A stretch of 64,000 nt of DNA from NCBI RefSeq assembly GCF_000737315.1, contig NZ_JMCB01000014.1:62001-126000 (forward strand), written 5' to 3'. The notes beneath the pieces were generated by a model, which searched no databases, was not told the DNA's origin, and saw nothing but the letters and a program-made list of their open reading frames with translations. Position numbers and translations under genes: made by a program. Shown here in pieces: positions 4,920-46,418 of the stretch (positions are counted from its first letter, which is position 1; each line of letters opens with the position of its first letter). This DNA is from Hyalangium minutum (GTDB taxonomy: Bacteria > Myxococcota > Myxococcia > Myxococcales > Myxococcaceae).

Positions 4920-4976
4920 CGCTGCGAGGGCGTGCCCGGCGCCAGCGCTCCGGCACCGGGCACGAGCCTCCTGCCG

Positions 4977-6278
4977 CTACCAGGGGCAGTTGACGACGTC
5001 CACCGTGCGCGTCAGCGATGGCGCGTGGTTGCCGGCGCTGTCCGTCAGCGTATAGGTGACGGTGTACCGGCCCGCCACCCAGCCATTCGGGTAGCCGTAC
5101 ACCCTTACCTCGGGCGTGAGGTTGCCGTAGCAGGCGTCCCACGCCTCCCAGCCCGGCTCCACGTAGGCGGCACCGCACTGGTGCGTCATCTGCGCGGCGC
5201 CGTTGAGGCGGAACGCGGGAGGTGTGGTGTCCTCCACCTTCACCGAGCGGATGGCGCTCACGGTCCAGCCATTCGCGTCCCTGGCGACGTACTGCACCGG
5301 GTAGGTGCCCTCGGCGCAGGTGTTCGGTCCCACGCCGTAGGCGTCATGCCCGGAGTTGAACGTGTGCACCGTCAACGGGCCGCACGCCGAGTCCCAGGCC
5401 TGCGCGCCCGGGTCCCCCCAGACGTCCTGGCCACACTCGAGCGTCATGTTCAGGCTGCCGAGGACCTCCAGCGTGGGCTGGCCATTCGAGCTCGGCGTGC
5501 ACGTCAGCGTGGAGACCTCGCCTTCGCCGGTGAGGTTCGGTCCCGGCGCGCAGCTCTGGCCTCCGGCACACACCCGCAGTGGGTTGCTGCACGTCCCCAA
5601 GGCCGTACAGACGTCCGCCGTGCAAAGGTCACCGTCGTCGCAGTCTTCGCTCCCCTCGCAGGCGGGGCCCACCATCTCCCCATTGATGCGGAGCACCGCG
5701 CCCACGGCACTGCTCATGGAGCAGCAGTCGTCCACTTGAGTGATGACCAGCCGGTTGCGCTCTCCCGGCTTGAAGTAGGCCGCCAGGTTGCCCGTCACGA
5801 GCGAATCCCCGATGAAGATGTAGCCCTCCGTCGCAACGATGCCGTTGGGGTGATCGGAGTTGAAGACCGTCACTCGGATGCCATCGTCCACCCAGGTGAA
5901 GGAGAGTTTGACCTCGTTCAGCACCGTCCCCGGCAAGACGTTCACGTACGTCTGGAAGTAGGTGAAGTCGCCGTAGACCCTGCACGCGCTCGGCACCTGG
6001 CAGAGGCGCGAGGACAGGTACATGCCGATGGTATCCGGGTCCGGCGAGGCGCCCCACCCCGCGGCCGCCTCGTCTGGGATGGAGGCCACGCCATACTCAC
6101 AGGTGTCTCCATTCCTCGGGGGGGTGCAGCCCAGGCGCACCAAGCCCTGTGGATTGGCGGTGGTCACCTCCGGCCCATCATGCATCTGCCATGGCGTACG
6201 GGTGTGCGCTCCGGCGGGCAGTCCTCCCAGCCAAACGAGGGCTGCGGCCATGGCTCCCAGGACACTGCGATGATTCAT
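4977..6278 (-). CDS. Secreted protein with two C-terminal DUF5011/HYR-like Ig domains
   Basis: ATG 6278 after GGGGGA; signal peptide MNHRSVLGAMAAALVWLGGLPAGA; PTLEVLGSLNMTLECG and PAFRLNGAAQMTHQCG...YTVTYTLTDSAGN domains. Confidence 0.8.
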   Translation of the reverse strand: MNHRSVLGAMAAALVWLGGLPAGAHTRTPWQMHDGPEVTTANPQGLVRLGCTPPRNGDTCEYGVASIPDEAAAGWGASPDPDTIGMYLSSRLCQVPSACRVYGDFTYFQTYVNVLPGTVLNEVKLSFTWVDDGIRVTVFNSDHPNGIVATEGYIFIGDSLVTGNLAAYFKPGERNRLVITQVDDCCSMSSAVGAVLRINGEMVGPACEGSEDCDDGDLCTADVCTALGTCSNPLRVCAGGQSCAPGPNLTGEGEVSTLTCTPSSNGQPTLEVLGSLNMTLECGQDVWGDPGAQAWDSACGPLTVHTFNSGHDAYGVGPNTCAEGTYPVQYVARDANGWTVSAIRSVKVEDTTPPAFRLNGAAQMTHQCGAAYVEPGWEAWDACYGNLTPEVRVYGYPNGWVAGRYTVTYTLTDSAGNHAPSLTRTVDVVNCPW

Positions 6279-6446
6279 GTGAAATCCCCCCACGGTTTTG
6301 AAGCAGTCAGCAGCTGCTCGCGGGCAGGCAGTGCCCAAGAGCGGCCGGACAGTCGCTACCGCTTCCACATGCATCAAGGCGTGCTGGGGTGCCGCTATTG
6401 GTCAGTGATTCGCCAGCAAGCAGGGCGTCTCCCAAAGGCCCCTGCT

Positions 6447-8006
6447 TTAGGGAGTCAGCTCCCTCCACGAGGCGAGAGGCAGGAGGCGGTTCGCCGCCGG
6501 GTCCATCTGGACGAGCGAGGCTCCCAGGAGGCCTACGCGCCGGCTGGGGCCGAAGCTCACGGGAGGCGTCAGGGGTGTCTCGAAGTCCCTCATGGACTCC
6601 AAGGCAGCCACCAGCCCGGCTTGGGTGACACCACTCCCCGCACGCTTCAGTCCTTCCACCAAGAGCTTGACGGACACGTATCCGCTCACCTGTGCGACCC
6701 AATGTCGTTCGGAAAGCGAGTGCCTCTGGAGAAAAGAGCGAAACTCGGGGCTTCGGGAGTGCAACGCGGCCTCCAGGGGCACGGGGCTAACGAAGCGCAC
6801 ACGCCGTGCCACCTCGGGCGCCATGGAAAGTCCATCCGGTCTCCCCAGCATGAGCGGGGCATAGATGGCCGTCTGTTGAGCCGAGTTCCCTAGGCCCGCC
6901 ACCAGCAGCTGGAGCTCGGAGAGCGTCCCTCCGAACAGAATTGCCGAGGGAGGATCGCGGCGAAGCGCGGCCACTACCGACTCCAGAGAGCGCGCGTCCG
7001 CGAGGTACAGGTGCTCTCGCAGCGTCACACCCTCGCGCCGCGACGTCTCCGTGCGTACCCCTGCCAACCACTGGCGGCCGGCGGCATCCTCCGGAGCCAC
7101 CACGGCCCAGTGCAAGGCCTTGGGGTCGGCCTCCATGCCGTGCTGCATGGCCACTCGCGCTTGCACGCTCAGCCCTGAATACAGCGCGAAGATGGCCTCC
7201 CCGGACGGCACATCCGTCGCCGGCAAGGCCATCAGAATGGGAGGGCTCTCCTCCTCTGCATGGCCGTCCCTGGGTTGAACCCCGTTCAGCAGCGCCACGA
7301 CTCCCGTTTCCAGGAGCCGGGCCTGGGCCGCGCCAGCTCCCGACTCGTCCTCAATGATCAGCTCCAACCTGCGGCGGTACACCCCTCCCTCCGCATTCAC
7401 CTCCGCGATGGCAGCCTGCAGTACATCCCGGACGTCCTGGCCCATGGGGGCCCGCGGGCCCGAGAGCGGCAACAGAGCTCCCACACGCAAAGCCTGGTCG
7501 GACACTCCCGGCGCTTTCTCCTCGCCCAGCACGCTCAGGTACGATGCGAGCGCGGACATGTCCTGCTCGGACAGCACGAAGTGGGGCATGGCAATGCTCA
7601 ACCGCCGCCCGGCAGGGTCCACGCCGTGTTGAATGGCCCGGGCCAGAGAGGCAACGTCGTACGCAGGGCGCCCGGCAGTCCGCCCGGGCGTGCCCTCCGG
7701 ACGCACGCGAGAGAGGCTGCGCGCGGTGATGTCCGGGGCTGCCACCCCGCCTTCCTGCGATCCCCTCCCTGTAGAGTGGTGGCAGTTGGCGCACGCCGCA
7801 GCCTGCCCGGACAACTCCACGCCCTCCTCCCCTAGGAGCGCGCGCAGCGGTTCACCGGAGGCAGTCACGCCTCGATGGAAGAGAGCCCTGCCCCGGTGCA
7901 CCTCCTCGGGCGAAGAGCGCGGCGCGGCGGCCGGCCGCACGACAGCGGCGGCCATCGCAACGGCAAGGCTGGCTCCCAGGAGTACCCACCCGCGTGCCCA
8001 GCTCAC
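6447..8006 (-). CDS. Cytochrome c domain fused to a type I periplasmic (branched-chain amino acid-like) substrate-binding domain
   Basis: GTG start after AAGGAGG; heme motif CANCH and likely axial Met in MPHF; C-terminal LRVGALLPLSGP...INAEGGVYRRRLEL periplasmic-binding signature. Confidence 0.85.
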   Translation of the reverse strand: MSWARGWVLLGASLAVAMAAAVVRPAAAPRSSPEEVHRGRALFHRGVTASGEPLRALLGEEGVELSGQAAACANCHHSTGRGSQEGGVAAPDITARSLSRVRPEGTPGRTAGRPAYDVASLARAIQHGVDPAGRRLSIAMPHFVLSEQDMSALASYLSVLGEEKAPGVSDQALRVGALLPLSGPRAPMGQDVRDVLQAAIAEVNAEGGVYRRRLELIIEDESGAGAAQARLLETGVVALLNGVQPRDGHAEEESPPILMALPATDVPSGEAIFALYSGLSVQARVAMQHGMEADPKALHWAVVAPEDAAGRQWLAGVRTETSRREGVTLREHLYLADARSLESVVAALRRDPPSAILFGGTLSELQLLVAGLGNSAQQTAIYAPLMLGRPDGLSMAPEVARRVRFVSPVPLEAALHSRSPEFRSFLQRHSLSERHWVAQVSGYVSVKLLVEGLKRAGSGVTQAGLVAALESMRDFETPLTPPVSFGPSRRVGLLGASLVQMDPAANRLLPLASWRELTP

Positions 8007-8027
8007 GGCGACCTCCTTTCATCCCCC

Positions 8028-8657
8028 CTACAAGGGCGAGGCCCCGAGGGGCGGGCTCGACTGCACTGGGGTGGGAGAGGGGCTCTTGGACTCGTCCGCC
8101 ACCACCCGCACAGCCTCGGCGATGCTCTCCGCCGACTCCATGGCGATGGACTTCGTCCAGGTCCCCGTGACCGCGTTGCCCAGCAGCAGCACCAGCGAGT
8201 GCTCCTCCGGCTTCTCCGTGTACCCGCCCAGCTTCTTGAGCAGCGTGCTCATGTTCTCGCGGCTACCGGTGAGGAACAGCCACCCCGGCTGCACCTTGAA
8301 TCGGGTGGCAAAGCGCCGCAGCTGCTCCGGGGTGTCCCGCGCGGAATCGACGGTCAGCGTGAGCATCACCACGTCCTTGCCGACGCGCGCCCCCAGCAGT
8401 CGTTGCACCTTGGCCAGGTTGGAGGTGATGGGCGAGCACGCGGTTCGGCAGGAGGCGAACGCGAAGTTGATGAGCACCGTCTTGCCCTGCATCAGGTCCG
8501 AATAGAACCGGTGCACCTTGCCTTCCTGGTCCACCACCTCGAGGTCCGTGAAGTAGCGGCGAGCCGCCTCGGAGTCCATCCGCTCCATTCCCTCCGCGCC
8601 ACTGCTTCCCGCCGCCAGCACGAGTCCAAGCACCACTGCACGCAGCCAGTCTTTCAT
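8028..8657 (-). CDS. SCO1/SenC family copper chaperone
   Basis: Signal peptide; CxxxC (FASCRTACSP) and downstream His (EEHS); ATG overlaps the upstream stop (ATGA). Confidence 0.9.
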   Translation of the reverse strand: MKDWLRAVVLGLVLAAGSSGAEGMERMDSEAARRYFTDLEVVDQEGKVHRFYSDLMQGKTVLINFAFASCRTACSPITSNLAKVQRLLGARVGKDVVMLTLTVDSARDTPEQLRRFATRFKVQPGWLFLTGSRENMSTLLKKLGGYTEKPEEHSLVLLLGNAVTGTWTKSIAMESAESIAEAVRVVADESKSPSPTPVQSSPPLGASPL

Positions 8658-9256
8658 CTTTGCACCTCCGCAGTTTTCTCCAGGGGCTGTCCCACCTCGC
8701 TCAGCGCCTCCCGCAGGCGGCTGGGCGTGGGCATGCCGTTGAGCCGGATCCACTTCCCCGTGGCTGGGTTCCCCACCAGCGTGACGGGGGTGTGGGACGT
8801 CTTGTCGGGCACCCAGCCTCCCAGGGCCTGCAGGACGCGCTTGACGCGCTCGGGCTCTCCCGTCAGGAAGCTCCACCCTGGGCGGGGCCCGGGCTCGAAC
8901 TTCTCCGCGAAGCGCTTCAAGCGCTCGGGCGTGTCCCTGACAGGATCGAGCGACACGGAGAGGAAGAGCACGTCCTTTCCCTCCGGCTCGCCCAGCTCGC
9001 GCCGCAGCCGCGCGAAGACGGCGCTCATGGGAGAACAGATGGTGGAGCAGGTGGTGAAGAGGAAGTTCACCACCACCGCCCGGCGGCCCGAGAGTTCCGA
9101 GGCCAGCCGCACGGGATGGCCGTCCTGGTCCACCAGGGTCTCATCGGGGATGTGGATGCCCCGGGTCTCTTCCGAGCGCACCGGCTCCGAAGCCTCCGGG
9201 GTGGGAGGCGCTGTCCCAACCCAGAGCGATGCGGCAGCGACCAGCACGAGTATCAC
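8654..9256 (-). CDS. SCO1/SenC family copper chaperone
   Basis: GTG 9256 overlapping the upstream TGA, RBS GGAG; CxxxC (FTTCSTICSP) and His (TSHT). Confidence 0.9.
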   Translation of the reverse strand: MILVLVAAASLWVGTAPPTPEASEPVRSEETRGIHIPDETLVDQDGHPVRLASELSGRRAVVVNFLFTTCSTICSPMSAVFARLRRELGEPEGKDVLFLSVSLDPVRDTPERLKRFAEKFEPGPRPGWSFLTGEPERVKRVLQALGGWVPDKTSHTPVTLVGNPATGKWIRLNGMPTPSRLREALSEVGQPLEKTAEVQR

Positions 9257-11244
9257 GGCGGCGTCTCCTGGACATGAAGGGATGCGGGCGGAGGTCCCTC
9301 GGCGGGCCCTACCCGGAGCGTCAACGGGGGCAGCTTGCCCAGGGGGCTGGCCGGCGTACGGGTCCCCACGAGCATCTGGTATTGGCCTGGCGAAGGTGGG
9401 GTGAAGCTCACCTCCAGCCCACCGTCCTCGACTGCTTGCGGCTCGACGACTCGCTGCCACGCCCCGGGAGGCTTGAAGAGCAGCACGGACACCTCTTGTG
9501 GGCGCAACGGCCGCTTCGTCGAGGCATTCACCAGGCGGAAGTGCAATCGCGTGGTCTGCGCCGCGTGCAGCCGTTTGTCCGCGTCGAACAGCGCGGTGAA
9601 CTCCACCTTCGGCACGCGCGCCTGCGCAGTGGCGCCCGGCGCCACCCGATATTCGAAGCAGACGGCCCTGCGCGGGCTGTCGAGCAGCAGAGGCACCTCG
9701 TACACGCCCTCCTGGCTCGGCTTCACCGCCGAGGCATACACCCCGGGCTTCACCTCGGAGAGGGAGCGGTCCACCACCATGACGGCGCGAGGCCGCCGGC
9801 CGTAATTGAGGTGGCTCCCCGAAGGGGCCATCATTCCCTCCTGGAAGAAGAAGAGAGCGCGATCCTCGGGAGAGGCGATGAGCACGCCCTGGCCATCGGG
9901 CGTAGGCACAACGGGCGCGGCGCCCTCCGCTTCGTCCCCCTTCCCCGGAAGTGTCTGGGCAAAGGGGATCCTCAGCGTCACGGGCTCCCCCGGCTTGGCC
10001 AGGCTCTCGCGTTGGATGAGCAGCAGCCGCTTGTCGCCCGCGTCCCGCACGTAGGCGAACTGGGGAGTGAAGGTGACGAAGTCGGGGGACACGAGTCCTT
10101 CGAAGACGTGGCGCGGCTGTCCCGTGGCCGTGTCCACCACGGAGACCTTCCCCGTGTCGCGGTGGAGGGCGAACAGCCAGCGCCCGCTCGGGTCCAACGC
10201 CACGCGCTCCACGCCCTCGCCAAGGCTGATCCGCTGGGCCACCTTGCGCCCGGCGCTGTCCACCACCACCACCTCGCCACGGGAGGGAATGGCGGCGTAT
10301 ACCGCGCGAGCCGAGTCACTCACCGCCAGGGAAGTCACTCCCTGGCCTACCTCCAAGCGCTCCACCACCTCGAGCCGATCCACGTCCACGCCGGAGAGGA
10401 CCTCCCCTCCCCTCCCGCTCACCCAGAGCATTCGCCCCTCCTCTGCGAAGACCAGCTCCTGAGGCCCGGGCCCCACGGGAAGGGTCCGCAGCACCTCCTG
10501 GCTCTTCGCATCCAGGAGGCTGACGGAGCCCTCCCCGTCATTGCCCACGGCGAGCAGTCCGCCGTCGGGGGAGAGGGCCAGGCGCGTGGGGCCCTTCCCC
10601 ACCGGGACAGTGCCTCGCAAGCGGAAGCGGACGGTGTCCACCACCGCGACGCGGTTCGCTCCGGGCAGGGAGAGGAAGAGACTCTCCTTGCTGGGGTGGA
10701 GCACCCAGTCCGCCGGGGCACCGGTCAGGGAGATGAGGCTGAAAAGCTTCGTCCGGCTGAAGGCCAACTGGGGATTGATGACCGACAGCGTATTGTCTTC
10801 GTTCAGCGTCACCGCCATGTAGCCGTTCATGTCCACGTCGGCTTTCCTGGACAGAAGCCCGCCCAGGAATTCGCTCACGAGCGTCTTGCAACCCTTTTCA
10901 TCTGGGGCCTGCTCACCGGCACGTGGCGTCATCCACGCCAGAGGGCGCTGACCGGCCAGCGGCTCCCCCGTGCGCGGGTCCGTCAAGGTGAAGGAAGCCC
11001 AGGCATCCGCCCCCGCTTTCACCTCGCCCCCCGAAGCCAGGGGCCGCAGGGAGAATGCGATTCGCACGTCCTCCCGCTCGAGCACCTGGGAGGGCGACTC
11101 GGGCGCGGGGGTCGCGGCGACTGAGCCCTCCACGACGGCTGCGCGAGACGAAGGAAGTGGTCTCCCCTGTGTAACCAGGAGCCAGATCAGGAGGCCCAGG
11201 CCAACGTAGAGCCCCCCTGCGACTGCCCATTTCAATTTGATCAT
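9253..11244 (-). CDS. YncE/YVTN-type beta-propeller protein (cytochrome d1-like fold) with N-terminal membrane anchor
   Basis: 663 aa; repeated VGxGP/LALSPDG...VSLLD blades; hydrophobic N-terminus; in operon with the oxidases and Sco genes. Confidence 0.85.
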   Translation of the reverse strand: MIKLKWAVAGGLYVGLGLLIWLLVTQGRPLPSSRAAVVEGSVAATPAPESPSQVLEREDVRIAFSLRPLASGGEVKAGADAWASFTLTDPRTGEPLAGQRPLAWMTPRAGEQAPDEKGCKTLVSEFLGGLLSRKADVDMNGYMAVTLNEDNTLSVINPQLAFSRTKLFSLISLTGAPADWVLHPSKESLFLSLPGANRVAVVDTVRFRLRGTVPVGKGPTRLALSPDGGLLAVGNDGEGSVSLLDAKSQEVLRTLPVGPGPQELVFAEEGRMLWVSGRGGEVLSGVDVDRLEVVERLEVGQGVTSLAVSDSARAVYAAIPSRGEVVVVDSAGRKVAQRISLGEGVERVALDPSGRWLFALHRDTGKVSVVDTATGQPRHVFEGLVSPDFVTFTPQFAYVRDAGDKRLLLIQRESLAKPGEPVTLRIPFAQTLPGKGDEAEGAAPVVPTPDGQGVLIASPEDRALFFFQEGMMAPSGSHLNYGRRPRAVMVVDRSLSEVKPGVYASAVKPSQEGVYEVPLLLDSPRRAVCFEYRVAPGATAQARVPKVEFTALFDADKRLHAAQTTRLHFRLVNASTKRPLRPQEVSVLLFKPPGAWQRVVEPQAVEDGGLEVSFTPPSPGQYQMLVGTRTPASPLGKLPPLTLRVGPAEGPPPASLHVQETPP

Positions 11245-11358
11245 TGGAAGCCGGGCCCCCTCGGTCCCGGCGTGATGGGCTGCGCATTCTCTTCAGCCGC
11301 ACCGAAAGGGCCATGCGGCCACAGTCCGGTGCGGCGTCGAGAGGTGCACCTTTGGGTC

Positions 11359-14300
11359 TCACTCCACCCGGAAGATGCCCCACATGCCGTCGGGGAAGAG
11401 GGCGCTGGGCTGGTCCTGGTAGAGGTAGTCGCCTTCCACCCGGAACTTCCCGCCCGCTCCATTCTGCGGCACCACGTTCCAATGCCGCATGGGCGCGTGC
11501 CCTCCCTGCGTGCCGACGATGTTCGAATCCTCCTTGTCACCAATCCGGGTCGAGCCATCCACCCAGGGCTCGTGCTGCCACTCGTGGCCGTGGAGCGTGA
11601 AGGCGTGACTGCGCGGATGCCCGGAGGCCTGCAACACCCGGAAGCGCACCTGATCGCCCGAGTTGGCGGTGAAGATGGGAGTCGCCGGATCCCCAAAGTC
11701 CTTCGAGCTCAGCAGGTCCGCCTGTTGCAAGTCATTCGCCTCGTCCAAGGCATTCTCAGGCCGCAAGCCGAGCCGGGCCCACAGAGGCTCGGTGCGGAGG
11801 TTGAATGCCTTATGGCCCGAGTCCTCCGCATCATCCGCGGCGTCATAGGGCAGCAGGGCGGTGCCACACTGGAGTCCGGCATCTTCACACTGGAAGCGCG
11901 GGTCGTCCGAGTGCAGGCCCAGCTCGTCCTGGTAGAGCAGCACGAACTCCCGGAACTTGCGCTGCTTGCCGTCCTTGTCCCGGTAGGAGACGGTGGCTTG
12001 GGCGTGCGTCCCTGAGTCCGTCTTCCAAGTGGCCCCTCGGGGCTCGATGATGAGCGCTCCCAGCGCGCTCTGCGTTCCGTGGTTCACCACGTCCGCCATG
12101 TCCCGAAGGTTGATGGCTCCGTACTCCACGGGTATCGGCTCGAATCGGCTGTGGGTGTTCTCGGGCGCGGGGGTCATGCCCTCCAGCGAGGCCAGCAGCA
12201 CGGGAGAGGTGATGAACGCGTCGTCCTCCAGCTTCCAGCGCCCCGCGTACCACCGGAAAACGCCCACGTTGCCTGGAGCCACCGTCTGCACCGGGTTGAG
12301 TCCCACGTTGGCCGAGTCACCCTCGCGCACGTTGAAGTCCACCAGTTGTGGGTGCAGCGAGGCGTGGTTGGACGACGCCACTTGATTGACGTTGAAGCCG
12401 TCCGTGATGACCGGCAGGAAGTTCCAGTGCGGCGTCTTGGGCATCACTTCGGGCAGGGCGTTGATGAGCTTGACCTCGATGCAATCCCCTGCGGCGGCCC
12501 TCAGGATGAGCGGCTCCGGGCGGCGCTTGCCACGGATGACGTCGTCCACATGCTCGGCGAGCACATAGAGGATCGCGTCCGGATCGAAGATGCGGAAGCG
12601 CTCGTTGTACACCAGCCTGCCTCCGGGCAGGTTGTCCCGCGCGGTCAGCGCGTACACGGTGTAGCGGCGCAAAGGCGCGTTGTCGGGACACGTGGGGTGC
12701 CCGACATTCTTCCGGCTGTGAATGGGGTTTCCCGGCAGCTCCTGCAGGTCGGGCTGAGTGTCTCGGTAGGTCCGGATGAGGCCCCACACCCCGTTCCACA
12801 AGTCGTCCGCAGGGGCGCTGTTATAGAGGTAGTCGGCGGTGGGGCCTCCCTGCACGGGCGGCAGGCGGTTCTCGAACTCGAAGTGCTCCGAGATGCCGAA
12901 CGCCTGGGCGTTGGAGAAGCCGCTGTTCGTGTCCGACGGCTCGTGCAGCCACCTCACCCCATTGATGGAGAGCGAGTGCATCTCCTCGTGTGCCCCCTCG
13001 ATCAGTCGGATGAGAATCCTGTCGCCTCCGTAGGCGCGCAGCAGCGGGGTGAATGGGTCGCCGTGGATCTCCGAGCGGAACACGTTGGCCATGTCCCCGG
13101 CAGGGCCCGCCTTCTGCACGAACACCCCGTCCACCTCCTGGGCAATGCGCAAAGGGATGGGCTCATTGCGGTAGGAAACCAACATGGTGCCAGGGTCTTC
13201 TTCGGCGATGGCCAGCGGGGGCGGATTCTCCGGGTTGGCGATGGCCCGAGGCAGTGGCTGGAGCTCGTTGCCCTGGATGTTCACCGGCTCTCCCCGGGCA
13301 TCGAAGACGAGGGCGAAGTCCGCGACAGCAAGTGAGAACTCCCGGAAGCTGTTCTCCCGGTTGGGGGTGAGGATGTCCGCGTTCCCTTGGGTGGGGCCGC
13401 CATCATCGCGCGTACCCAACTGCGCCCCCGTCTCCGGATCTCGCCACCGGCTCCCCTTCGGCTCAACAGCCAGCGAGGCGTACAAGCCATGTTGCTGGTG
13501 GGAAGAAGGCGAGAAGTGGTCGTGGGTGAAGACTGTCCGGACGGTGCGGTCGTTTCCGTCATCGTCGACGATGGGGTCTGCCCACCAGCGCTGCACCGTC
13601 GTCTGTGTGCCCAGGGGCGCAAAGGGAAGCAGGGGGTGCGGCCGCGCGGTCAGCTTCTGGCGTGGGCCCCCAGGCTGGGTCGTCCCATCGGCCTTGAAGG
13701 CTCCTCCCCGCGCGTTCGCCGCCGCGATGCGCATCTGCACTTCCTGGGCGGCAAAGGTGCCGTCCTCGTAGTTCCAGCCGTTGGCCGCCCCATCGGAGCT
13801 GGTGACGTCGAACTTCACCAGGTGGATGTGCTGGCCCACCGTGTCGGTGGGCGTGAAGATCTGGAACGCGTCCTCTTCGAGGACGTCCGGGATGAGGTTG
13901 GTGCCATGGGACACCACGCACTCGCCCGAGTTGGCGCGTATGACGAGCGGCTCAGGGGGACGCTCGCCGCTCAAGGTGGCCTGCACATCGTTGTTCAGGA
14001 CGAGGATGCGCGCCTGGGGGTCGTGCCAGCCCGCGCGGTTCACCACCATGTCCAACTGAACGAAGGCCACACGGTAGTCGCGCTCCTTGGTGCCCTTGGG
14101 GCAGGGGTCCGCGTACGGGGCTCCCGGCTTCGGCGGCTGGCCATTGACGAAGAAGGAGGCCTTCTTGCCCTCCGGCGTGAATGCCGGGTACGCCGCTGCG
14201 GGGAAGCCGTAGAGCGTCCTCTTGTTCTCTCCCCCTTCGAAGTCCCCGGCATGGAAGTCCATGGCCGCCCGCTCCGCTGGCGTCCCCTGGTCGGGCAACA

Positions 14301-16236
14301 GCTTGAGGTCCACCTCCTCCAGGCGCACGTCAAACTCACCGCTTTCGCCCAGGACGACGCCGCCCTGGGGGACGTTCACTACCAGGTGCCGAGGCAGCCC
14401 ACCGTTGACCTCCAGGTCCAGCGGAGGTTGGGCGGCGCGCCGACCCGCTACCCCCGCGATGTAGAAAGGGTACCCCGGAAAAGCGGGCCTCTTGACGTTG
14501 TCGCCGTTGGCCAGCGCCACCTGCGTGGGCTTGTACGTGGGCATGGGCGGCATGGGCCGCCCCGGCAGGGGAACCAACGCTGGAGTGGGAACGCCTTGTG
14601 CCAGCTCCCCGTCAGGCAGGTTTCTGTCCGGCGTGCCCGCCTCGAAGACGTCGTGGTTGCGCCACAGCGACCACATGCCCTGGGCGAAGTGGGGATAGAA
14701 GTGGCAGTGGAAGATGGCATCTCCCACCGTGAGGTTGCGGTTACCTCCTCCCCCAAAGTTGATGTCGTAGATGAAGGTGCTTCCGGGGCTGATGGTCTGC
14801 GAGTCCAGGTAGGTGGACTCGTCGTCCCGCGGTGAGTGCAGCCACTGGTGCGCGTGCAGGTGGAAGATATGCGCCTCCTTGGGACCCGCATGCATGTTGC
14901 GGATGCGCACCGGATCTCCCAGGTAGGCGTGGTGCACGTTGGACGGGTCCTCCGGGAACAGGGCCCTCTCCGCCTTGCCGTCCCCGTCTCGCTCCAGGTT
15001 CAGCGCCGGGTCTCCGTTAGGCCAGGAGGAGAGGAAGAACTCCTCGAACTTGCACTCGAAGCACTTCGCGCTGGGGCCAACACGCGCACGGTTCGCCAAC
15101 AGACGCGGACCCAATGCATCCGCTCCATAGTTGATGGCAAAGCCGTCCCGGATCGACCTCAACGTCGGGTCCTCCTCGAGCTCAGGGAAGGCCTGCACCA
15201 CCTTGATTTCATCGTGGAAGACGGCGGTGAACTCGCGAAAGACGCCCACGTTCTGCGAGGTGGGCGTCCCCAGCTCCGTGTCCTTGTAACCCGCGACGAT
15301 GGCGTAGAGGTCTCCATGGACGATTTCGTTGTCGTCACCCAGGATCTCCAGGATGGGAACGCCCTGCCCATCTCTGGCCGAGTAGTTGATGCGCGGAGTG
15401 CCGTCGCTGTTGCGCCCCTTGGTGGCGGCCTGGAGTTCTTCAGCCGTCACCTGCGAGCGGAACCAGCGGGAGCCTTTGGGCTCCACATGGACCGCTCCGA
15501 AGAAGCCCGCAGCGAGGGCCGCATTGTCCCCCTCTCCGCCCAGCAGGTGCGCCATGCTTCGGAACAGAAATGTGCCCTCTCGCTCAGCGAAGAGCCGGTA
15601 CTCGCGCGTCTGGCCGGGCTCCGCCAAGCTCTCGCCGTTGAGCCCCACGCGGGCGGCATCCGCGTCGATGTTGAGGTACTGCAGCCCCTGCACGTGCAGT
15701 CCGGCCGTGCGCGTCGCCGGTGCGTCGTTTCGGGGGTCATCCGAGGGCTCATCCAAAGGTTCCTCCGGAGGCTCCGGAATCTGGCCGCGGTCGGGCGCCA
15801 GCCAGTTGGTGAAGGTCACCTTCAGGCAATCTCCCTTGTTCACCCGGAGCACCAAGGGACGAGGCCGCTTGCCGTCGCGCAGCCTGGCATTGCCCGGGCT
15901 GGGGACGTTCCCCTCGATGGCCACTACGTCTCGGCGCAGGGCATAGACCATCCCGATGGGGTTGAAGGCTCCGAAGCGGTTGTAGGTGAAGACTTGATCC
16001 AGAGCCACCACGTCCGCCTTCACCGTGCGCTGGCAGGTGGAGCTGGGACTGTCGCTCGACGTCGAACTGTCGCTCGGCGTCAACGACGATGCCGCCTCTG
16101 ATGATGCCTCCTCTGAAAGCTCGGGTGGCGGCACACTCTCGGAAAACGGAGTGTCCGCGCCACATGCCAGCAGCACGCAGGCCGCAAGCGCAATCACTGC
16201 CTTGGACTTCACGCCTCTTCGTATTGGGACCCGCAT
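11359..16236 (-). CDS. Large MnxG-like multicopper oxidase lipoprotein, copy A (1625 aa)
   Basis: ATG 16236 after GGGGGGAG; lipobox LLAC; copper motifs HIFHLHAH, HCHFYPHFAQGM, GQHIH, THDHFSPSSHQQHG, HAFTLHGH. Confidence 0.9.
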   Translation of the reverse strand: MRVPIRRGVKSKAVIALAACVLLACGADTPFSESVPPPELSEEASSEAASSLTPSDSSTSSDSPSSTCQRTVKADVVALDQVFTYNRFGAFNPIGMVYALRRDVVAIEGNVPSPGNARLRDGKRPRPLVLRVNKGDCLKVTFTNWLAPDRGQIPEPPEEPLDEPSDDPRNDAPATRTAGLHVQGLQYLNIDADAARVGLNGESLAEPGQTREYRLFAEREGTFLFRSMAHLLGGEGDNAALAAGFFGAVHVEPKGSRWFRSQVTAEELQAATKGRNSDGTPRINYSARDGQGVPILEILGDDNEIVHGDLYAIVAGYKDTELGTPTSQNVGVFREFTAVFHDEIKVVQAFPELEEDPTLRSIRDGFAINYGADALGPRLLANRARVGPSAKCFECKFEEFFLSSWPNGDPALNLERDGDGKAERALFPEDPSNVHHAYLGDPVRIRNMHAGPKEAHIFHLHAHQWLHSPRDDESTYLDSQTISPGSTFIYDINFGGGGNRNLTVGDAIFHCHFYPHFAQGMWSLWRNHDVFEAGTPDRNLPDGELAQGVPTPALVPLPGRPMPPMPTYKPTQVALANGDNVKRPAFPGYPFYIAGVAGRRAAQPPLDLEVNGGLPRHLVVNVPQGGVVLGESGEFDVRLEEVDLKLLPDQGTPAERAAMDFHAGDFEGGENKRTLYGFPAAAYPAFTPEGKKASFFVNGQPPKPGAPYADPCPKGTKERDYRVAFVQLDMVVNRAGWHDPQARILVLNNDVQATLSGERPPEPLVIRANSGECVVSHGTNLIPDVLEEDAFQIFTPTDTVGQHIHLVKFDVTSSDGAANGWNYEDGTFAAQEVQMRIAAANARGGAFKADGTTQPGGPRQKLTARPHPLLPFAPLGTQTTVQRWWADPIVDDDGNDRTVRTVFTHDHFSPSSHQQHGLYASLAVEPKGSRWRDPETGAQLGTRDDGGPTQGNADILTPNRENSFREFSLAVADFALVFDARGEPVNIQGNELQPLPRAIANPENPPPLAIAEEDPGTMLVSYRNEPIPLRIAQEVDGVFVQKAGPAGDMANVFRSEIHGDPFTPLLRAYGGDRILIRLIEGAHEEMHSLSINGVRWLHEPSDTNSGFSNAQAFGISEHFEFENRLPPVQGGPTADYLYNSAPADDLWNGVWGLIRTYRDTQPDLQELPGNPIHSRKNVGHPTCPDNAPLRRYTVYALTARDNLPGGRLVYNERFRIFDPDAILYVLAEHVDDVIRGKRRPEPLILRAAAGDCIEVKLINALPEVMPKTPHWNFLPVITDGFNVNQVASSNHASLHPQLVDFNVREGDSANVGLNPVQTVAPGNVGVFRWYAGRWKLEDDAFITSPVLLASLEGMTPAPENTHSRFEPIPVEYGAINLRDMADVVNHGTQSALGALIIEPRGATWKTDSGTHAQATVSYRDKDGKQRKFREFVLLYQDELGLHSDDPRFQCEDAGLQCGTALLPYDAADDAEDSGHKAFNLRTEPLWARLGLRPENALDEANDLQQADLLSSKDFGDPATPIFTANSGDQVRFRVLQASGHPRSHAFTLHGHEWQHEPWVDGSTRIGDKEDSNIVGTQGGHAPMRHWNVVPQNGAGGKFRVEGDYLYQDQPSALFPDGMWGIFRVE

Positions 16237-16407
16237 GCTGATCTCCCCCCTGAGCAAGAGGGGCAGGGGTAGTTCAGCAGCGGGAGAGAGGGGATTGTCC
16301 GCCGGTCAGAGGCCGAGTCTCTTCCGTGACGCCTACTCTGAACAGCCGCGCCGGAGGAGCCATCCGGCTACGCTCCGGCGCGGCGTCGAGAGGTGCACCT
16401 TTGGGCC

Positions 16408-19400
16408 TCACTCCACCCGGAAGATGCCCCACATGCCCTCGGGGAAGAGGACGCTGGGCTGGTCCTGGTAGAGGTAGTCACCTTCCACCCGGAACTTCCC
16501 GCCCGCTCCATTCTCAGGCACCACGTTCCAGTGCCGCATGGGTGCGTGCCCTCCCTGGGTACCAACGATGTTCGACTCCTCGTTGTCGCCAATCCGGCTG
16601 GAGCCGTCCACCCAGGGCTCGTGCTGCCACTCGTGGCCATGGAGCGTGAAGGCGTGACTGCGCGGGTGCCCGGAAGCCTGCAACACCCGGAAGCGCACCT
16701 CGTCGCCATCTTTGGCGGTGAAGATGGGAGTCGCCGGCTCCCCAAAGTCCTTCGAGCTCAGCAGATCCGCCTGTTGCAGGTTATTCGCCTCCACCAAGGC
16801 GTTCTCCGGCCGCAAGCCGAGTCTCGCCCAGAGCGGCTCGGTGCGGAGGTTGAATGCCTTGTGGCCCGACTCCTCCGCGTCATCCGTGGCGCCGTAGGTC
16901 AGCAGGGCGGTGCCACACTGGAGCCCGGCATCTTCGCACTGGAAGCGCGGGTCGTCCGAGTGCAGGCCCAGCTCATCCTGATAGAGCAGCACGAACTCCC
17001 GGAACTTGCGCTGCTTCCCGTCCTTGTCCCGGTAGGAGACGGTGGCCTGGGCGTGCGTGCCCGGGTCCGTCTTCCAGGTGGCCCCCCGGGGCTCGATGAT
17101 GAGCGCCCCCAGCACGCTCTGCGTCCCGTGGTTCACCACGTCCGCCATGTCCCGAAGATTGATGGCTCCGTACTCCACGGGTATCGGCTCGAAGACGCCG
17201 TTCCTCTCTCGCGCGGAGCCCCCGGCCTCCAGTGAGGCCAGCAGCACGGGGGCGCTGACGGACTCGTCGTCCTCCAGCTTCCAGCGTCCCGCATACCACC
17301 GGTAGACGCCCACTTTGCCCGGCGCCACCGTCTGCACCGGGTTGAGTCCCACGTTGGCCGAGTCGCCCTCGCGCACGTTGAAGTCCACCAGCTGCGGGTG
17401 CAGCGAGGCCTGGTTGGAAGACGCCACTTGATTGACGTTGAACCCCTCCGTAATGACGGGCAGGAAGTTCCAGTGCGGCGTCTTGGGCAGGACTTCCGGC
17501 AGGGCATTGACGAGCTTGACCTCGATGCAGTCCCCCGCCGCGGCCCTCAGGATGAGCGGCTCCGGGCGGCGCCTGCCACGGATGACGTCGTCCACGTGCT
17601 CGGCGAGCACATAGAGGATGGCGTCCGGATCGAAGATGCGGAAGCGCTCGTTGTACACCAGCCTGCCACCGGGCAAGTTGCCCCTCGCGGTGAGGGCGTA
17701 CACGGTGTAGCGGCGCAAGGGCGCGTCCTCGGGGCAGGTGGGGTGTTTGGCATTCGCCCGGCCGTGAATGGGATTTCCCGGCAGCTCCAGCAGGTCGGGC
17801 TGGGTGTCGCGGTAGGTCCGGATGAGGCCCCACACGCCATTCCACAAGTCGTCCGCGGGGGCACTGTTATAGAGGAAGTCGGCGGTGGGGCCTCCTTGCA
17901 CAGGAGGCAGGCGGTCCGCGAGCTCGAAATGCTCCGAGATGCCAAACGCCTGTGCGTTGGCGAAGCCACTGTTCTTGTCCGCCGGCTCGTGCAGCCACCT
18001 CACCCCATTGATGGAGAGCGAGTGCATCTCCTCCTGTGCGCCCTCAGTCAGACGGATCAACACCTTGTCGCCTCCGTAGGCGCGCATCAGCGGGGTGAAC
18101 GGGTCGCCGTGCACGTCCGAGCGGAACACGTTGGCCATGTCTCCTGCGGGACCCTGTCTCTGCACGAACGTCCCTCCCACTTTCTGGGCGATGCGCAGGG
18201 GGATGGGCTCGTTGCGGTAGTTCAGCAACATGGAGCCAGGATCATCCGAGGAGATGGCCAGCGGGGGAGGATTCTCCGGGTTGGCGATAGCCCGAGGCAG
18301 CGGCTGGAGCTCGTTGCCCTGGACGTTGATCGGTTCTCCCCGGTCGTCGAAGACGAGGGCGAAGTCCGCGACGGCGAGTGGGAACTCCCGGAAGCTGTCT
18401 TCCCGCTTGGGGGTGAGGATGTCCGCGCGCCAGCGGGTAGGCCCGCCATCATCGCGCGTGCCCAGCTGCACCCCCGTCTCCGGGTCTCGCCACCGGCTCC
18501 CCTTCGGCTCGACAGCCAGAGAGGCGTAGAAGCCGTGTTGCTGCATGGAAGACGGCGAGAAGTGATCGTGGGTGAAGGACGTCTGGACGGTGCGGTCCTC
18601 TCCCTGGTCGTTGACGATGGGGTCTGCCCACCAGCGCTGCACCGTCGTCTGCGTGCCGAGGGGCGCGAAGGGCAGCAGCGGGTGGGGCCGCGCGGTCAGC
18701 TTCTGGCGTGGGCCCCCAGGTTTGGTTGTGCCATCGGCCTTGAAGGCTCCTCCCCGGGCGTTCGCCGCCGCGATGCGCATCTGCACTTCCTGGGCGGCAA
18801 AGGTGCCGTCCTCGTAGTTCCAGCCGTTGACCGAGCCGTCGGAGCTGGTCACGTCGAACTTCACCAGGTGGATGTGCTGGCCCAGCGTGTCGGTGGGCGC
18901 GAAGATCTGGAACGCGTCCTCTTCGAGGGCGTCAGGGATGAGGTTGGTGCCATGGGACACCACGCACTCGCCCGAGTTGGCGCGCATGACGAGCGGCTCG
19001 GGAGGGCGCTCGCCACTCAACGTGGCCTGCACGTCGTCGTTCAAGACGAAGATGCGCGCCTGGGGGTCGTGCCAGCCCGCGCGGTTCACCACCATGTCCA
19101 GCTGGACGAAGGCCACACGGTAGTCGCGCTCCTTGGTGCCCTTGGGGCAGGGGTCTGCGTACGGGGCTCCCGGCTTCGGGGGCTGGCCATTGACGAAGAA
19201 GGAGGCCCGCTTGCCCTCCGGGGTGAACGCCGGGTACGCCGCCGCGGGGAAGCCATAGAGCGTCCTCTGATTCTCCCCTCCTTCGAATTCCCCGGCATGG
19301 AAGTCCATGGCCACCTGCTCCGCCGGCGTCCCCTGGTCGGGCAGCAGCTTGAGGTCCGCCTTCTCCAGAGTCACGTCGAATTCGCCACGCTCTCCCAGGA

Positions 19401-21282
19401 CGACGCCGTTCGGGGGCACGTTCACCACCAGATGCCGGGGCAGCCCGCCGTTCACCTCCAGGTCCAGCGGGGGTTGGGCGGCGCGTCGGCCCGCCACCGA
19501 CGCGATGAAGAAGGGGTACCCCGGAAAGGCGGGCCGCTTCACCGTCTCGCCGTTGGCCAGCGTCACCTGCGTGGGCTTGTATGTGGGCATGGGCGGCATG
19601 GCTCGCCCCGGCAGGGGAACCAGTGCCGGGGTGGGAACGCCTCGTGCCAGCTCCCCATCCGGCAGGTTCCTGTCCGGCGTGCCCGCCTCGAAGACGTCAT
19701 GGTTGCGCCACAGCGACCACATGCCCTGGGCGAAGTGGGGATAGAAGTGGCAGTGGAAGATCGCGTCGCCCACCGTGAGGTTGCGGTTGCCTCCTCCCCC
19801 GAAGTTGATGTCGTAGATGAAGGTGCTTCCGGGGCTGATGGTCTGCGAGTCCAGGTACGTGGACTCGTCGTCCCGCGGTGAGTGCAACCACTGGTGGGAA
19901 TGCAGGTGGAAGATGTGCGCCTCTTTGGGGCCCGCGTGCATGTTCCGGATGCGCACCGGGTCTCCCAGGTAGGCGTGGTGCACGTTGGACGGGTCCTCCG
20001 GGAACAGGGCCCTCTCCGCCTTGCCGTCCTCGTCGCGCTCGAGATTCAGCGCCGGGTCTCCATTGGGCCAGGAGGAGAGAAAGAACTCCTCGAACTTGCA
20101 CTCGAAGCACTTCGCGCTGGGGCCGATGCGCGCACGGTTCGCCAGCAACCGCGGGCCCAGAGCATCCGATCCATAGTTGATGGCAAAGCCGTCCCGGATC
20201 GCTCTCAACGTCGGGTCGTCCTCGAGCTCGGGGAAGGCCTGCACCACCTTGATTTCATCGTGGAAGACGGCGGTGAACTCGCGAAAGACACCCACGTCCT
20301 GCGAGGTAGGCGTCCCCAGCTCCGTGTCCTTGTAGTTGGCGACGATGGCGTAGAGGTCTCCATGGACGATTTCGTTGCCGTCACCGAGGATCTCCAAGAT
20401 GGGAACGCCCCGCTTGTCCTTGGCCTCGTAGTTGATGCGCGGAGTGCCGTCGCTGTTGCGCCCCTTGGTGGCGGCCTGGAGCTCTTCGGCCGTCACCTGC
20501 GAGCGGAACCAACGGGAGCCCTTCGGCTCCACATGGACAGCACCAAAGAAGCCCGCGGCGAGGGCCGCATTGTCCCCTTCTCCGCCCAGCAGGTGCGCCA
20601 TGCTTCGGAACAGGTACGTACCCTCTCGCTCGGCGAAGAGCCGGTACTCGCGCGTCTGGCCGGGCTCCGCAAGACTATCCTCGTTGCGCCCCACGTGAGC
20701 GGCGTCCGCGTCGATGTTGAGGTACTGCAGTCCCTGCACGTGCAGTCCGGCCACGCGCGTCGCCGGTGCGTCGTTGCGGAGGTCCTCCGAGGGCACGTGC
20801 GAGGGAACCTCCGGAGGCTCCGGAATCTGGCCGCGGTTGGGAGCCAGCCAGTTGGTGAAGGTCACCTTCAGGCAATCTCCCTTGTTCACCCGGAGCACCA
20901 GGGGACGGGGACGCTTGCCATCGCGCAGCCTGGCATTGCCTGGACCGGGGGAGTTCCCCTCGATGGCCTCCACGTCGCGGCGCAGGGCATAGACCATCCC
21001 AATGGGGTTGAAGGCTCCGAAGCGGTTGTAGGTAAAGGCCTGGTCCAGAGCCACCACGTCCGCCTTCACCGTGCGCTGGCAGGTGGAGCTGGGACTGTCG
21101 CTCGACGTCGAACTGCCGCTCGGCGCCGAGGACGATGCCGCCTCTGCTGAGGCCGTCTCTGAAGGCTCTGGAGGCGGCACCTTCTCAGAGAGCGAAGTGT
21201 CCGAGCCACATGCCAGCAGCACGCAGGCCGCCAGCACAACTCCTGCCGTGGAATCTAGTCGTTTGCGTATGGGAACCAACAT
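16408..21282 (-). CDS. Large MnxG-like multicopper oxidase lipoprotein, copy B (1624 aa)
   Basis: ATG 21282 after GAGGGGGG; lipobox LLAC; HIFHLHSH, HCHFYPHFAQGM, GQHIH, THDHFSPSSMQQHG, HAFTLHGH. Confidence 0.9.
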   Translation of the reverse strand: MLVPIRKRLDSTAGVVLAACVLLACGSDTSLSEKVPPPEPSETASAEAASSSAPSGSSTSSDSPSSTCQRTVKADVVALDQAFTYNRFGAFNPIGMVYALRRDVEAIEGNSPGPGNARLRDGKRPRPLVLRVNKGDCLKVTFTNWLAPNRGQIPEPPEVPSHVPSEDLRNDAPATRVAGLHVQGLQYLNIDADAAHVGRNEDSLAEPGQTREYRLFAEREGTYLFRSMAHLLGGEGDNAALAAGFFGAVHVEPKGSRWFRSQVTAEELQAATKGRNSDGTPRINYEAKDKRGVPILEILGDGNEIVHGDLYAIVANYKDTELGTPTSQDVGVFREFTAVFHDEIKVVQAFPELEDDPTLRAIRDGFAINYGSDALGPRLLANRARIGPSAKCFECKFEEFFLSSWPNGDPALNLERDEDGKAERALFPEDPSNVHHAYLGDPVRIRNMHAGPKEAHIFHLHSHQWLHSPRDDESTYLDSQTISPGSTFIYDINFGGGGNRNLTVGDAIFHCHFYPHFAQGMWSLWRNHDVFEAGTPDRNLPDGELARGVPTPALVPLPGRAMPPMPTYKPTQVTLANGETVKRPAFPGYPFFIASVAGRRAAQPPLDLEVNGGLPRHLVVNVPPNGVVLGERGEFDVTLEKADLKLLPDQGTPAEQVAMDFHAGEFEGGENQRTLYGFPAAAYPAFTPEGKRASFFVNGQPPKPGAPYADPCPKGTKERDYRVAFVQLDMVVNRAGWHDPQARIFVLNDDVQATLSGERPPEPLVMRANSGECVVSHGTNLIPDALEEDAFQIFAPTDTLGQHIHLVKFDVTSSDGSVNGWNYEDGTFAAQEVQMRIAAANARGGAFKADGTTKPGGPRQKLTARPHPLLPFAPLGTQTTVQRWWADPIVNDQGEDRTVQTSFTHDHFSPSSMQQHGFYASLAVEPKGSRWRDPETGVQLGTRDDGGPTRWRADILTPKREDSFREFPLAVADFALVFDDRGEPINVQGNELQPLPRAIANPENPPPLAISSDDPGSMLLNYRNEPIPLRIAQKVGGTFVQRQGPAGDMANVFRSDVHGDPFTPLMRAYGGDKVLIRLTEGAQEEMHSLSINGVRWLHEPADKNSGFANAQAFGISEHFELADRLPPVQGGPTADFLYNSAPADDLWNGVWGLIRTYRDTQPDLLELPGNPIHGRANAKHPTCPEDAPLRRYTVYALTARGNLPGGRLVYNERFRIFDPDAILYVLAEHVDDVIRGRRRPEPLILRAAAGDCIEVKLVNALPEVLPKTPHWNFLPVITEGFNVNQVASSNQASLHPQLVDFNVREGDSANVGLNPVQTVAPGKVGVYRWYAGRWKLEDDESVSAPVLLASLEAGGSARERNGVFEPIPVEYGAINLRDMADVVNHGTQSVLGALIIEPRGATWKTDPGTHAQATVSYRDKDGKQRKFREFVLLYQDELGLHSDDPRFQCEDAGLQCGTALLTYGATDDAEESGHKAFNLRTEPLWARLGLRPENALVEANNLQQADLLSSKDFGEPATPIFTAKDGDEVRFRVLQASGHPRSHAFTLHGHEWQHEPWVDGSSRIGDNEESNIVGTQGGHAPMRHWNVVPENGAGGKFRVEGDYLYQDQPSVLFPEGMWGIFRVE

Positions 21283-21468
21283 TCCGAACCCCCCTCTGAA
21301 AAAACAGGCCCAGAGGTAGTTCAAGTGCGGGGGATGCGTCATTGCTCGCCGGTCCGGACGCGAGTCTCCTCACGGACTCCCAAGGTGACGCGGGCTGTCT
21401 CATCTTCAGCAGCTTGCCGAGTCACTTGTAGACTCCGCATCACGGCATGGCTTCCTTCGTCAGTCTTG

Positions 21469-21484
21469 GGTGATTGCTATCACC
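21469..21484. promoter_or_regulatory. Palindromic operator-like site GGTGAT-N4-ATCACC
   Basis: GGTGAT tgct ATCACC with perfect arms, in the divergent oxidase/beta-helix intergenic region; same geometry as the sites at 41.1-41.2 kb. Confidence 0.6.
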
Positions 21485-21534
21485 CTGAAGGATGCCCCTC
21501 CTGCCAACTCCCGCCGCGCGGAGGCCGTGCCCAG

Positions 21535-21550
21535 GGTGACCGCAGACACC
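21535..21550. promoter_or_regulatory. Operator-like site GGTGAC-N4-GACACC
   Basis: GGTGAC cgca GACACC, the same variant as 41201-41216. Confidence 0.55.
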
Positions 21551-21627
21551 CTCCATGTCTCGGGGAGGTCCTCACCCTCCGCTCACTGTGGGAGCGGGGC
21601 TCGCTCACCAATCGAGGAGAAACACCC

Positions 21628-24753: not shown

Positions 24754-24767
24754 GGACCGTCCTGATC

Positions 24768-41005: not shown

Positions 41006-41043
41006 GAGGGGTTCCTCGGGGTGAGTTGTGGACCGCCGCCCCA

Positions 41044-41059
41044 AGCAGAAGGCGTGCCA
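41044..41059 (-). promoter_or_regulatory. Sigma-54 -24/-12 promoter of the S1 protease
   Basis: Minus strand TGGCACGCCTTCTGCT, 38 nt upstream of ATG 41005. Confidence 0.75.
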
Positions 41060-41138
41060 GCCTATCACGAGAAAGCGCTTTCACTCGAAAGGCGGTTTTT
41101 TCCGGAAGGCCTCTAGGATTGCCCACACCCGGTTTCCT

Positions 41139-41331: not shown

Positions 41332-41347
41332 TGGTCCTGATGTTGCT
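41332..41347 (+). promoter_or_regulatory. Sigma-54 -24/-12 promoter of the GH30 gene
   Basis: TGGTCCTGATGTTGCT (GG-N10-GC, TTGC at -12), 74 nt upstream of ATG 41422. Confidence 0.65.
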
Positions 41348-41421
41348 TCACGCCGCGCGCGCCCGGACGAGCCTCACCGTATCCGGGCGTGGCTTTCCTC
41401 CCCATCCTTCAGGAACTGCGT

Positions 41422-46353: not shown

Positions 46354-46418
46354 GGCGGGCTCCGAGTGAGTGAGGGTAGGAATTAGTGCCTACCAGTGTG
46401 TTTATGTATGCCCTATGG

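Follow-up and report, generated by a model that had tools for sequence, protein, structure and literature searches.

Gene Organization of the Locus

The 64,000-nucleotide stretch of Hyalangium minutum DNA analyzed here (contig NZ_JMCB01000014.1, positions 62,001 to 126,000; hereafter the window) carries on its minus strand, at 6447-21282, an operon of six co-oriented genes, two of which encode large multicopper oxidases resembling the manganese oxidase MnxG. A preliminary description of the window, made from the letters alone, had listed the same six genes (oxidase B, oxidase A, a beta-propeller protein, two Sco proteins and a cytochrome c/binding-protein fusion) together with overlapping stop and start codons at the propeller-Sco-Sco junctions, and both observations were reproduced. 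The long open reading frames (ORFs) span 6447-21342, and gene starts were fixed from the junction sequences. In the direction of transcription, the features are as follows:

16408-21282, minus strand: oxidase A, 1,624 residues; the start is an internal Met at 21282, the longest ORF extending to 21342
16336-16392, minus strand: hairpin 3′ of the oxidase A stop codon, found by folding, without a U tract
11359-16236, minus strand: oxidase B, 1,625 residues, tandem paralogue of oxidase A; start at 16236
11282-11349, minus strand: paralogous hairpin 3′ of the oxidase B stop codon, found by folding and by alignment of both 3′ flanks
9253-11244, minus strand: YVTN-type beta-propeller protein, 663 residues, with an N-terminal membrane anchor and a C-terminal extension
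8654-9256, minus strand: Sco-1 copper chaperone, 200 residues; GTG start
8028-8657, minus strand: Sco-2 copper chaperone, 209 residues; ATG start
6447-8006, minus strand: cytochrome c/type-I periplasmic-binding-protein fusion, 519 residues; GTG start, signal peptide

The TGA stop codon of the propeller gene overlaps the GTG start of Sco-1 in the tetranucleotide GTGA, and that of Sco-1 overlaps the ATG start of Sco-2 in ATGA. The spacing between Sco-2 and the last gene is 20 nucleotides and includes a GGAGG ribosome-binding site. Judged from their sequences, the six ORFs are genuine genes and not chance ORFs, because their G+C content at third codon positions is 0.80-0.86 (window G+C, 65-70%), the ratio of nonsynonymous to synonymous divergence (dN/dS) between the oxidases is 0.20, thousands of homologues exist, and every product has a Pfam or NCBIfam match. 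Inspection of the N-terminal sequences reveals an export signal in all six products. A scan for sigma-70-like promoters returned no site and terminator-like sites at chance level only, and no fit to the sigma-54 consensus was seen by eye in the upstream regions. A short inverted repeat, AGCAGGG...CCCTGCT, noticed by eye only, lies at 6418-6446 (minus strand), immediately 3′ of the last gene's stop codon, where the operon may end.

Family, Copper Sites and Export Signals of the Two Oxidases

The only NCBIfam model matched by the oxidases is NF041487 (manganese-oxidizing multicopper oxidase MnxG), with E = 0 and scores of 1017 bits for oxidase A and 1024 bits for oxidase B. The match is distributed over seven stretches of a profile 1,894 positions long, compared with about 1,624 residues for the proteins considered here. 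Pfam returns weak Cu-oxidase_3 and Cu-oxidase_2 matches, and none of the CueO, CopA, laccase or copper-resistance models of NCBIfam is matched at E ≤ 0.01. The structural database gives the same picture: the sole strong match in the PDB is chain A of 9bxa, the MnxG of the Bacillus sp. PL-12 Mnx complex (E = 4.5e-136), which aligns in six stretches, from residue 95 to residue 1643 in full ORF numbering (chain residues 6-1203), and thereby over all six domains. The only other PDB match is a small laccase, with E = 0.0016 over 87 residues. The C-terminal 161 residues of the oxidases match MnxG domains 2, 4 and 6, which reveals that the proteins are built as a three-fold repeat of a two-domain unit.

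Both oxidases carry the copper motifs HIFHLH (residue 456), HCHFYPHFAQGM (residue 510), HIH (residue 803) and HDH (residue 905), that is, one HxxHxH, one HCHxxxHxxxxM and then two HxH, in the MnxG order. A further HGH lies in the last domain (residues 1548/1549). In the alignment to 9bxa, HIFHLHSHQW pairs with HVFHYHVHQW, HCHFYPHFAQGMW with HCHLYPAFGIGMW, GQHIHLVKFDV with GFHIHFVKFDV, and FTHDHF with FFHDHL. Domain architecture, motif order and motif spacing are all those of the Bacillus protein. The copper-ligand residues are invariant in a 10-sequence alignment of A, B and eight homologues with 52-64% identity to A. This corresponds to the full set of type-1 and trinuclear ligands of the multicopper oxidase superfamily, and each oxidase is predicted to contain six cupredoxin domains, one type-1 copper and one trinuclear copper cluster. 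As a separate observation, chain A of 9bxa has an Ala within HCHLYPAFGIGMW where the type-1 copper His (H516) stands in the window proteins and in every one of the ten aligned homologues.

The full-length homology, the six domains and the permuted motif order place both proteins in the MnxG family in its broad sense. The copper ligands are shared with E. coli CueO, P. putida CumA and M. xanthus CuoA, CuoB and CuoC; unlike the oxidases of the window, those proteins have about 500 residues and the motif order HxH, HxH, HxxHxH, HCH. The CueO/laccase type, defined by about 500 residues, three cupredoxin domains and a model match, is thus not what is found here. These results uphold the MnxG-like assignment and the four copper motifs of the preliminary description, which had named grouping with CueO/laccase-type rather than MnxG proteins as the observation that would speak against it.

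At their N-termini, the two proteins begin with MLVPIRKRLDSTAGVVLAACVLLAC|GSD (oxidase A, with the lipobox cysteine at Cys25) and MRVPIRRGVKSKAVIALAACVLLAC|GAD (oxidase B). Each signal consists of basic residues, a hydrophobic stretch and an LLAC|G lipobox, the signal peptide and invariant Cys of a bacterial lipoprotein; between each signal and the first conserved domain lie about 45 residues in which Ser, Thr, Pro and Glu are frequent. No twin-arginine translocation (Tat) motif is recognizable in either signal. A lipobox is present in 20 of the 22 Myxococcota copies compared, versus 3 of 65 others; the homologues from Leptothrix, Undibacterium and most Acidobacteriota have ordinary signal peptides. 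The lipoprotein signal is therefore a clade trait of Myxococcota, which distinguishes these oxidases from proteobacterial homologues such as those of Leptothrix and Undibacterium (P. putida itself is not among the loci).

Accessory Proteins

The propeller protein matches the TIGR02276 YVTN repeat and Pfam propeller models and has a hydrophobic N-terminus. Across 54 homologues C119, C529 and M471 are conserved and no His is, which makes a NosZ-like copper centre in this protein unlikely. Sco-1 and Sco-2 match PF02630 with E values of 7e-18 and 1e-17, respectively. The CxxxC motif lies at residue 70 in both (CSTIC in Sco-1, CRTAC in Sco-2) and the downstream His residues occur in 'KTSHTP' and 'PEEHSL', so that both proteins have the thioredoxin fold, cysteine pair and histidine of the Sco1/SenC family.

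The fusion protein matches PF00034 (E = 7e-5) and PF13458. Its haem site comprises CANCH at residue 72 and Met140-Pro141, the CxxCH and distal Met of a class I c-type cytochrome, and C72, C75, H76, M140 and P141 are invariant in 28 homologues. In Sorangium, the homologues are named 'cytochrome c/ABC transporter substrate-binding protein' by NCBI. The AlphaFold model has a predicted local distance difference test score (pLDDT) of 85, and by Foldseek its binding domain resembles LivJ-type proteins. No specific ligand could be named for this domain, the Foldseek matches being generic LivJ-type binders of fatty acids, branched-chain amino acids and aromatic acids. Metagenome contigs encode homologues of the fusion protein with 91% and 84% identity, which indicates that close relatives of the organism have already been sampled in the environment.

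Comparison with the Systems of Pseudomonas putida GB-1 and Bacillus

The mnxG operon of P. putida GB-1 (PputGB1_2447 and the next five genes) consists, in order, of mnxG, a 40-residue YVTN beta-propeller repeat protein, two SCO1/SenC proteins, a substrate-binding protein with a cytochrome c domain, and a SurA-domain protein (PMC11409713, Table 4). The first five gene types are matched at the present locus in the same order and orientation, in line with the statement in the preliminary description that pseudomonad loci carry Sco and beta-propeller genes. The oxidase, YVTN propeller, two Sco and cytochrome c/substrate-binding genes that define a P. putida-type operon are all present, and membership of the locus in the MnxG family and in this operon type is considered nearly certain from sequence comparison. 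The locus differs from the GB-1 operon in its tandem oxidase duplication and in having no MnxS/MnxR-type regulator nearby. The comparison with P. putida MnxG was made through the NCBIfam profile and the published table; neither the 80 loci compared from the species-representative scan nor the plasmid collection included one from Pseudomonas. In GB-1, MnxG and McoA oxidize Mn(II) independently of each other, and each is sufficient (PMC13631088).

The Bacillus enzyme oxidizes Mn(II) as well as Mn(III) and functions in a complex with two small subunits that it needs, MnxE and MnxF (PMC5622069). It is about 400 residues shorter than the oxidases described here and has no Sco, propeller or cytochrome partners. 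Identity to oxidase A is 35-44% for the long proteobacterial homologues and 26-30% for plasmid-borne proteins of Bacillus and Priestia. By gene layout alone, no MnxE or MnxF gene is adjacent: the gap between A and B is about 170 nucleotides, that between B and the propeller gene is 114 nucleotides, and the upstream gene is divergent. Because this leaves no room for such genes, the locus appears to be of the pseudomonad type and not of the Bacillus type.

Distribution of the Operon

The protein search returned 3,062 oxidase homologues at E ≤ 1e-10, the best outside the window having 62-64% identity. They come from Archangium, Sorangium, Polyangium, Minicystis, Myxococcus, Corallococcus, Cystobacter, Vulgatibacter and Lujinxingia, followed by many Acidobacteriota, and some are already labelled 'manganese oxidation' (Minicystis) or 'manganese oxidase' in the databases. 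The scan of species-representative genomes confirmed an oxidase locus in at least 590, including Nitrospira, Planctomycetota, Methylobacter and Leptothrix discophora. Informative loci were defined as those with at least 7 kb of sequence downstream (n = 50), and in 28 of them, from many phyla, the propeller, Sco and cytochrome c/binding-protein genes follow in order downstream. Five more loci, one with less than 7 kb downstream, have the full cassette upstream of the oxidase gene; in Leptothrix discophora, a known Mn oxidizer, the cassette is located upstream, on the strand opposite to that of the oxidase gene. Gene-level look-ups show the cassette in the closest metagenomic relative, in Myxococcus stipitatus and in Sorangium So0157-2, the last with two oxidase genes in tandem.

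The other Myxococcota operons (Sorangium, Polyangium, Myxococcus, Corallococcus, Cystobacter, Minicystis) share the cassette and form a single clade in the tree. Their oxidases are 53-64% identical to those of the window, which points to a lineage without a close sequenced relative in the collections searched. Best hits and the tree both assign the window to Myxococcota, and none of the matches listed from the species-representative genomes reaches 100% identity. The cassette is widespread; the present locus adds a further example of it and does not constitute a novel type of system. What is peculiar to the locus (the tandem duplication, the lipoprotein signals and the hairpins) is modest. The preliminary description overrated the novelty: homologues are frequent in Myxococcota, database labels already call some of them manganese oxidase, and a 2022 preprint already counts MnxG of the P. 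putida type as one of the commonest Mn-oxidase homologues of Deltaproteobacteria.

Several variants were encountered along the way. In Myxococcus stipitatus (L002, 17360-18505) two Sco domains are fused in one protein of 381 residues, and a histidine kinase/response regulator pair lies just beyond the cassette on the opposite strand. Homologues from Pyrinomonadaceae (Acidobacteriota) are fused to WD40-like beta-propeller, dipeptidyl-peptidase, PPC and Ig-like domains and reach 1,900-2,800 residues. Contig DYGR01000032.1, binned as 'Candidatus Methanoperedens nitroreducens', encodes an MnxG homologue (45% identity) followed by a propeller gene; either the contig is misbinned or the gene has moved into an archaeon that has metal-oxide-using relatives.

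Tandem Duplication and Intergenic Hairpins

Oxidases A and B are 90% identical as proteins, with a synonymous divergence (dS) of 0.28, a dN of 0.057 and hence the ratio given above, and no segment along the whole length has a relaxed look. The duplicated unit takes in about 90 nucleotides 5′ and about 75 nucleotides 3′ of the gene. Departures from columns invariant in the eight other homologues are nearly all common to both copies and therefore predate the duplication; conserved residues lost in one copy only number two, both in B. From these values the duplication is old, and both copies are held by purifying selection. A neighbour-joining tree without support values joins A and B as sisters and puts the closest metagenomic relative next to the pair, all three inside the Myxococcota clade. 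The tandem copies of Sorangium and Methylobacter arose separately from the A/B pair in the same tree. Tandem arrays of two or three MnxG-like genes recur in lineages that are not related to each other: in Sorangium (L003, L005, L007, L030), in Methylobacter luteus (L076) and in three further loci (L025, L045, L047).

One of the oxidase copies could be redundant and heading for loss, as tandem duplicates are often short-lived. This is considered very unlikely here: a dS of 0.28 is combined with constraint over the entire length, both frames are open, the copper ligands are kept in both copies, and the departures from invariant columns are nearly all shared and older than the duplication.

The hairpins that follow the two genes are very stable, and neither has a U tract. 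The folded 91-nucleotide stretch after A (16320-16410) has a minimum free energy of -48.2 kcal/mol (z = -3.3), and that after B (11271-11361) one of -41.3 kcal/mol (z = -4.1). The two differ by paired changes that preserve the stem (G-C to A-U), the hairpin having been duplicated along with the gene. Such compensatory changes suggest a maintained RNA element, and the hairpins may act as attenuating or transcript-stabilizing elements. A search of Rfam over 4800-22000 at E ≤ 1 gave no match, including in the duplicated 5′ regions and the hairpins, and a riboswitch or other known RNA in these elements was rejected on that basis. With its own upstream region for each gene and a hairpin between them, A and B could differ in expression.

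Surroundings of the Operon

The gene that follows the operon (4977-6377, minus strand) encodes a surface protein in which only a bacterial Ig-like domain is recognized; it is unrelated to SurA and is not conserved in related loci. On the other side, 2 kb upstream of oxidase A and beyond the divergent gene, lies a gene for a dye-decolourizing (DyP-type) peroxidase (23416-24771, minus strand; TIGR01413, 102.6 bits). Some DyP enzymes oxidize Mn(II). In the closest relative (L001, 7829-9640), a cytochrome c/FTR1 iron-permease fusion, absent from the window, is encoded directly upstream of the oxidase gene. Neither this fusion nor a DyP peroxidase was found beside the oxidase in the other 82 loci, and an iron-uptake link (a ferroxidase with its permease, or an EfeB-like DyP) was rejected as a conserved association because these neighbours are not repeated.

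Elsewhere in the window are genes for secreted proteases, for a GH30 enzyme with ricin domains, for a PilZ protein and for a histidine kinase; in other genomes, neither these genes nor the DyP gene are linked to the cassette. Secreted hydrolases form a cluster made up of an alpha-lytic protease with a ricin domain (39485-41080), a GH30 enzyme with ricin domains (41341-43302) and an M4 thermolysin-like protease (44515-46389), which fits a predatory or saprophytic lifestyle.

Proposed Function and Alternatives

Taken as a whole, the locus is best read, with reasonable though limited confidence, as the Myxococcota version of the P. putida-type mnxG operon, in which lipoprotein oxidases loaded by Sco proteins deposit Mn oxide. 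With a Sec-type lipoprotein signal and no Tat motif, the oxidases would cross the inner membrane unfolded and acquire their copper on the extracytoplasmic side, with the two Sco chaperones as the most likely donors. The mature proteins, predicted to be lipidated, would be tethered to the membrane through the lipid anchor and the flexible Ser/Thr/Pro linker. They would take single electrons from the metal substrate and pass them to O2; the substrate would most likely be Mn(II) and then Mn(III), with Mn(III/IV) oxide deposited at the cell envelope. For the propeller and the cytochrome c/binding-protein fusion, both conserved partners, a role in assembly, scaffolding or redox poising is thought most likely. 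On a more speculative note, the cytochrome domain could explain why Mn oxidation by P. putida requires cytochrome c maturation genes, a dependence long known, as indicated by a title cited in PMC11930936. The preliminary description had also proposed lipidated oxidases serving spore coats, prey killing or polymer oxidation: the lipobox found in both proteins agrees with the first part, while the three roles find no support in the sequence.

Manganese is the probable physiological substrate, and we infer Mn(II) oxidation from homology and synteny, which makes A and B candidate manganese oxidases (EC 1.16.3.3). Several observations weigh against this view. Both oxidases reach only about one-third of the NF041487 equivalog cutoff of 3,100 bits; the cutoff is reached by none of the homologues scored (Leptothrix 739, Undibacterium 1109, Nitrospira 896, Myxococcus stipitatus 940 and Sorangium 900 bits), and A and B score on a par with the proteins of Betaproteobacteria. 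The identities to long proteobacterial and to Bacillus/Priestia homologues given above are low, and the SurA-domain gene, sixth in the GB-1 operon, is not at this locus. We know of no Mn-specific residue signature, and the sequence therefore does not by itself identify the substrate. In the literature searched, no paper was found that describes a myxobacterium oxidizing Mn, and the preliminary description, too, knew of no biochemical account in Myxococcales. Likewise, the same literature yielded no functional study of the propeller-Sco-Sco-cytochrome c/binding-protein cassette and no test of the accessory-gene roles proposed here.

It is possible, though clearly less probable, that the family and its assembly machinery are as described and that the physiological substrate is not Mn but Fe(II), Cu(I), or phenolic or humic compounds, with Mn oxidation a side activity at most. 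Promiscuity is common among multicopper oxidases, and CueO and CotA oxidize Mn in vitro with a Michaelis constant 10-20-fold higher; the missed equivalog cutoff, the occurrence of the family in hundreds of species never described as Mn oxidizers, and the iron-permease fusion just upstream of the oxidase gene in the closest relative point in the same direction. On the other hand, all family members with functional data are Mn oxidases, the FTR1 and DyP neighbours do not recur beside the oxidase in other loci, and the cassette held in common with GB-1 argues for a conserved function.

Energy conservation, in which the electrons of Mn(II) would exit through the cytochrome c domain to the respiratory chain and not solely to O2 at the trinuclear cluster, is regarded as very improbable. 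A haem c domain with invariant ligands is fixed in the cassette, which also occurs in Nitrospira, and an O2-reducing oxidase has no obvious need of it. However, the trinuclear-cluster ligands are intact, so that the oxidase itself is expected to reduce O2, and nothing at the locus ties it to a respiratory complex; to our knowledge, no coupling of Mn(II) to respiration has been described for any MnxG. Least probable of all is a Bacillus-type Mnx system, that is, a spore-coat enzyme in complex with MnxE and MnxF, for although the homology to Bacillus MnxG is full-length and many myxobacteria sporulate, small co-oriented genes would not fit into the gaps, the accessory genes correspond to those of the pseudomonad operon, and identity is lower than to the long proteobacterial type.

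Within the preferred interpretation of a P. putida-type operon depositing Mn oxide, a further proposal is that the paralogues divide labour, acting at different life stages or in different settings (vegetative as against developing cells, or swarm as against fruiting body), or preferring Mn(II) versus Mn(III), on a lipid-anchored, Mn-oxide-forming surface with the cytochrome c/binding-protein partner taking part in the redox chemistry. This proposal is considered doubtful at present; if true, such a surface would be a previously unrecognized myxobacterial trait.

Biological Significance

Few natural oxidants and sorbents are as strong as manganese oxides, yet the enzymology behind them is based on a handful of organisms. 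Should the operon prove active, the Mn oxidizers would gain an abundant group of predators from soils and sediments. Myxococcota are prominent in the RNA-derived community of ferromanganese concretions, as found in a survey (PMC13395527). The wider point concerns the family as a whole: the four-gene accessory cassette that accompanies these oxidases is conserved across many phyla.

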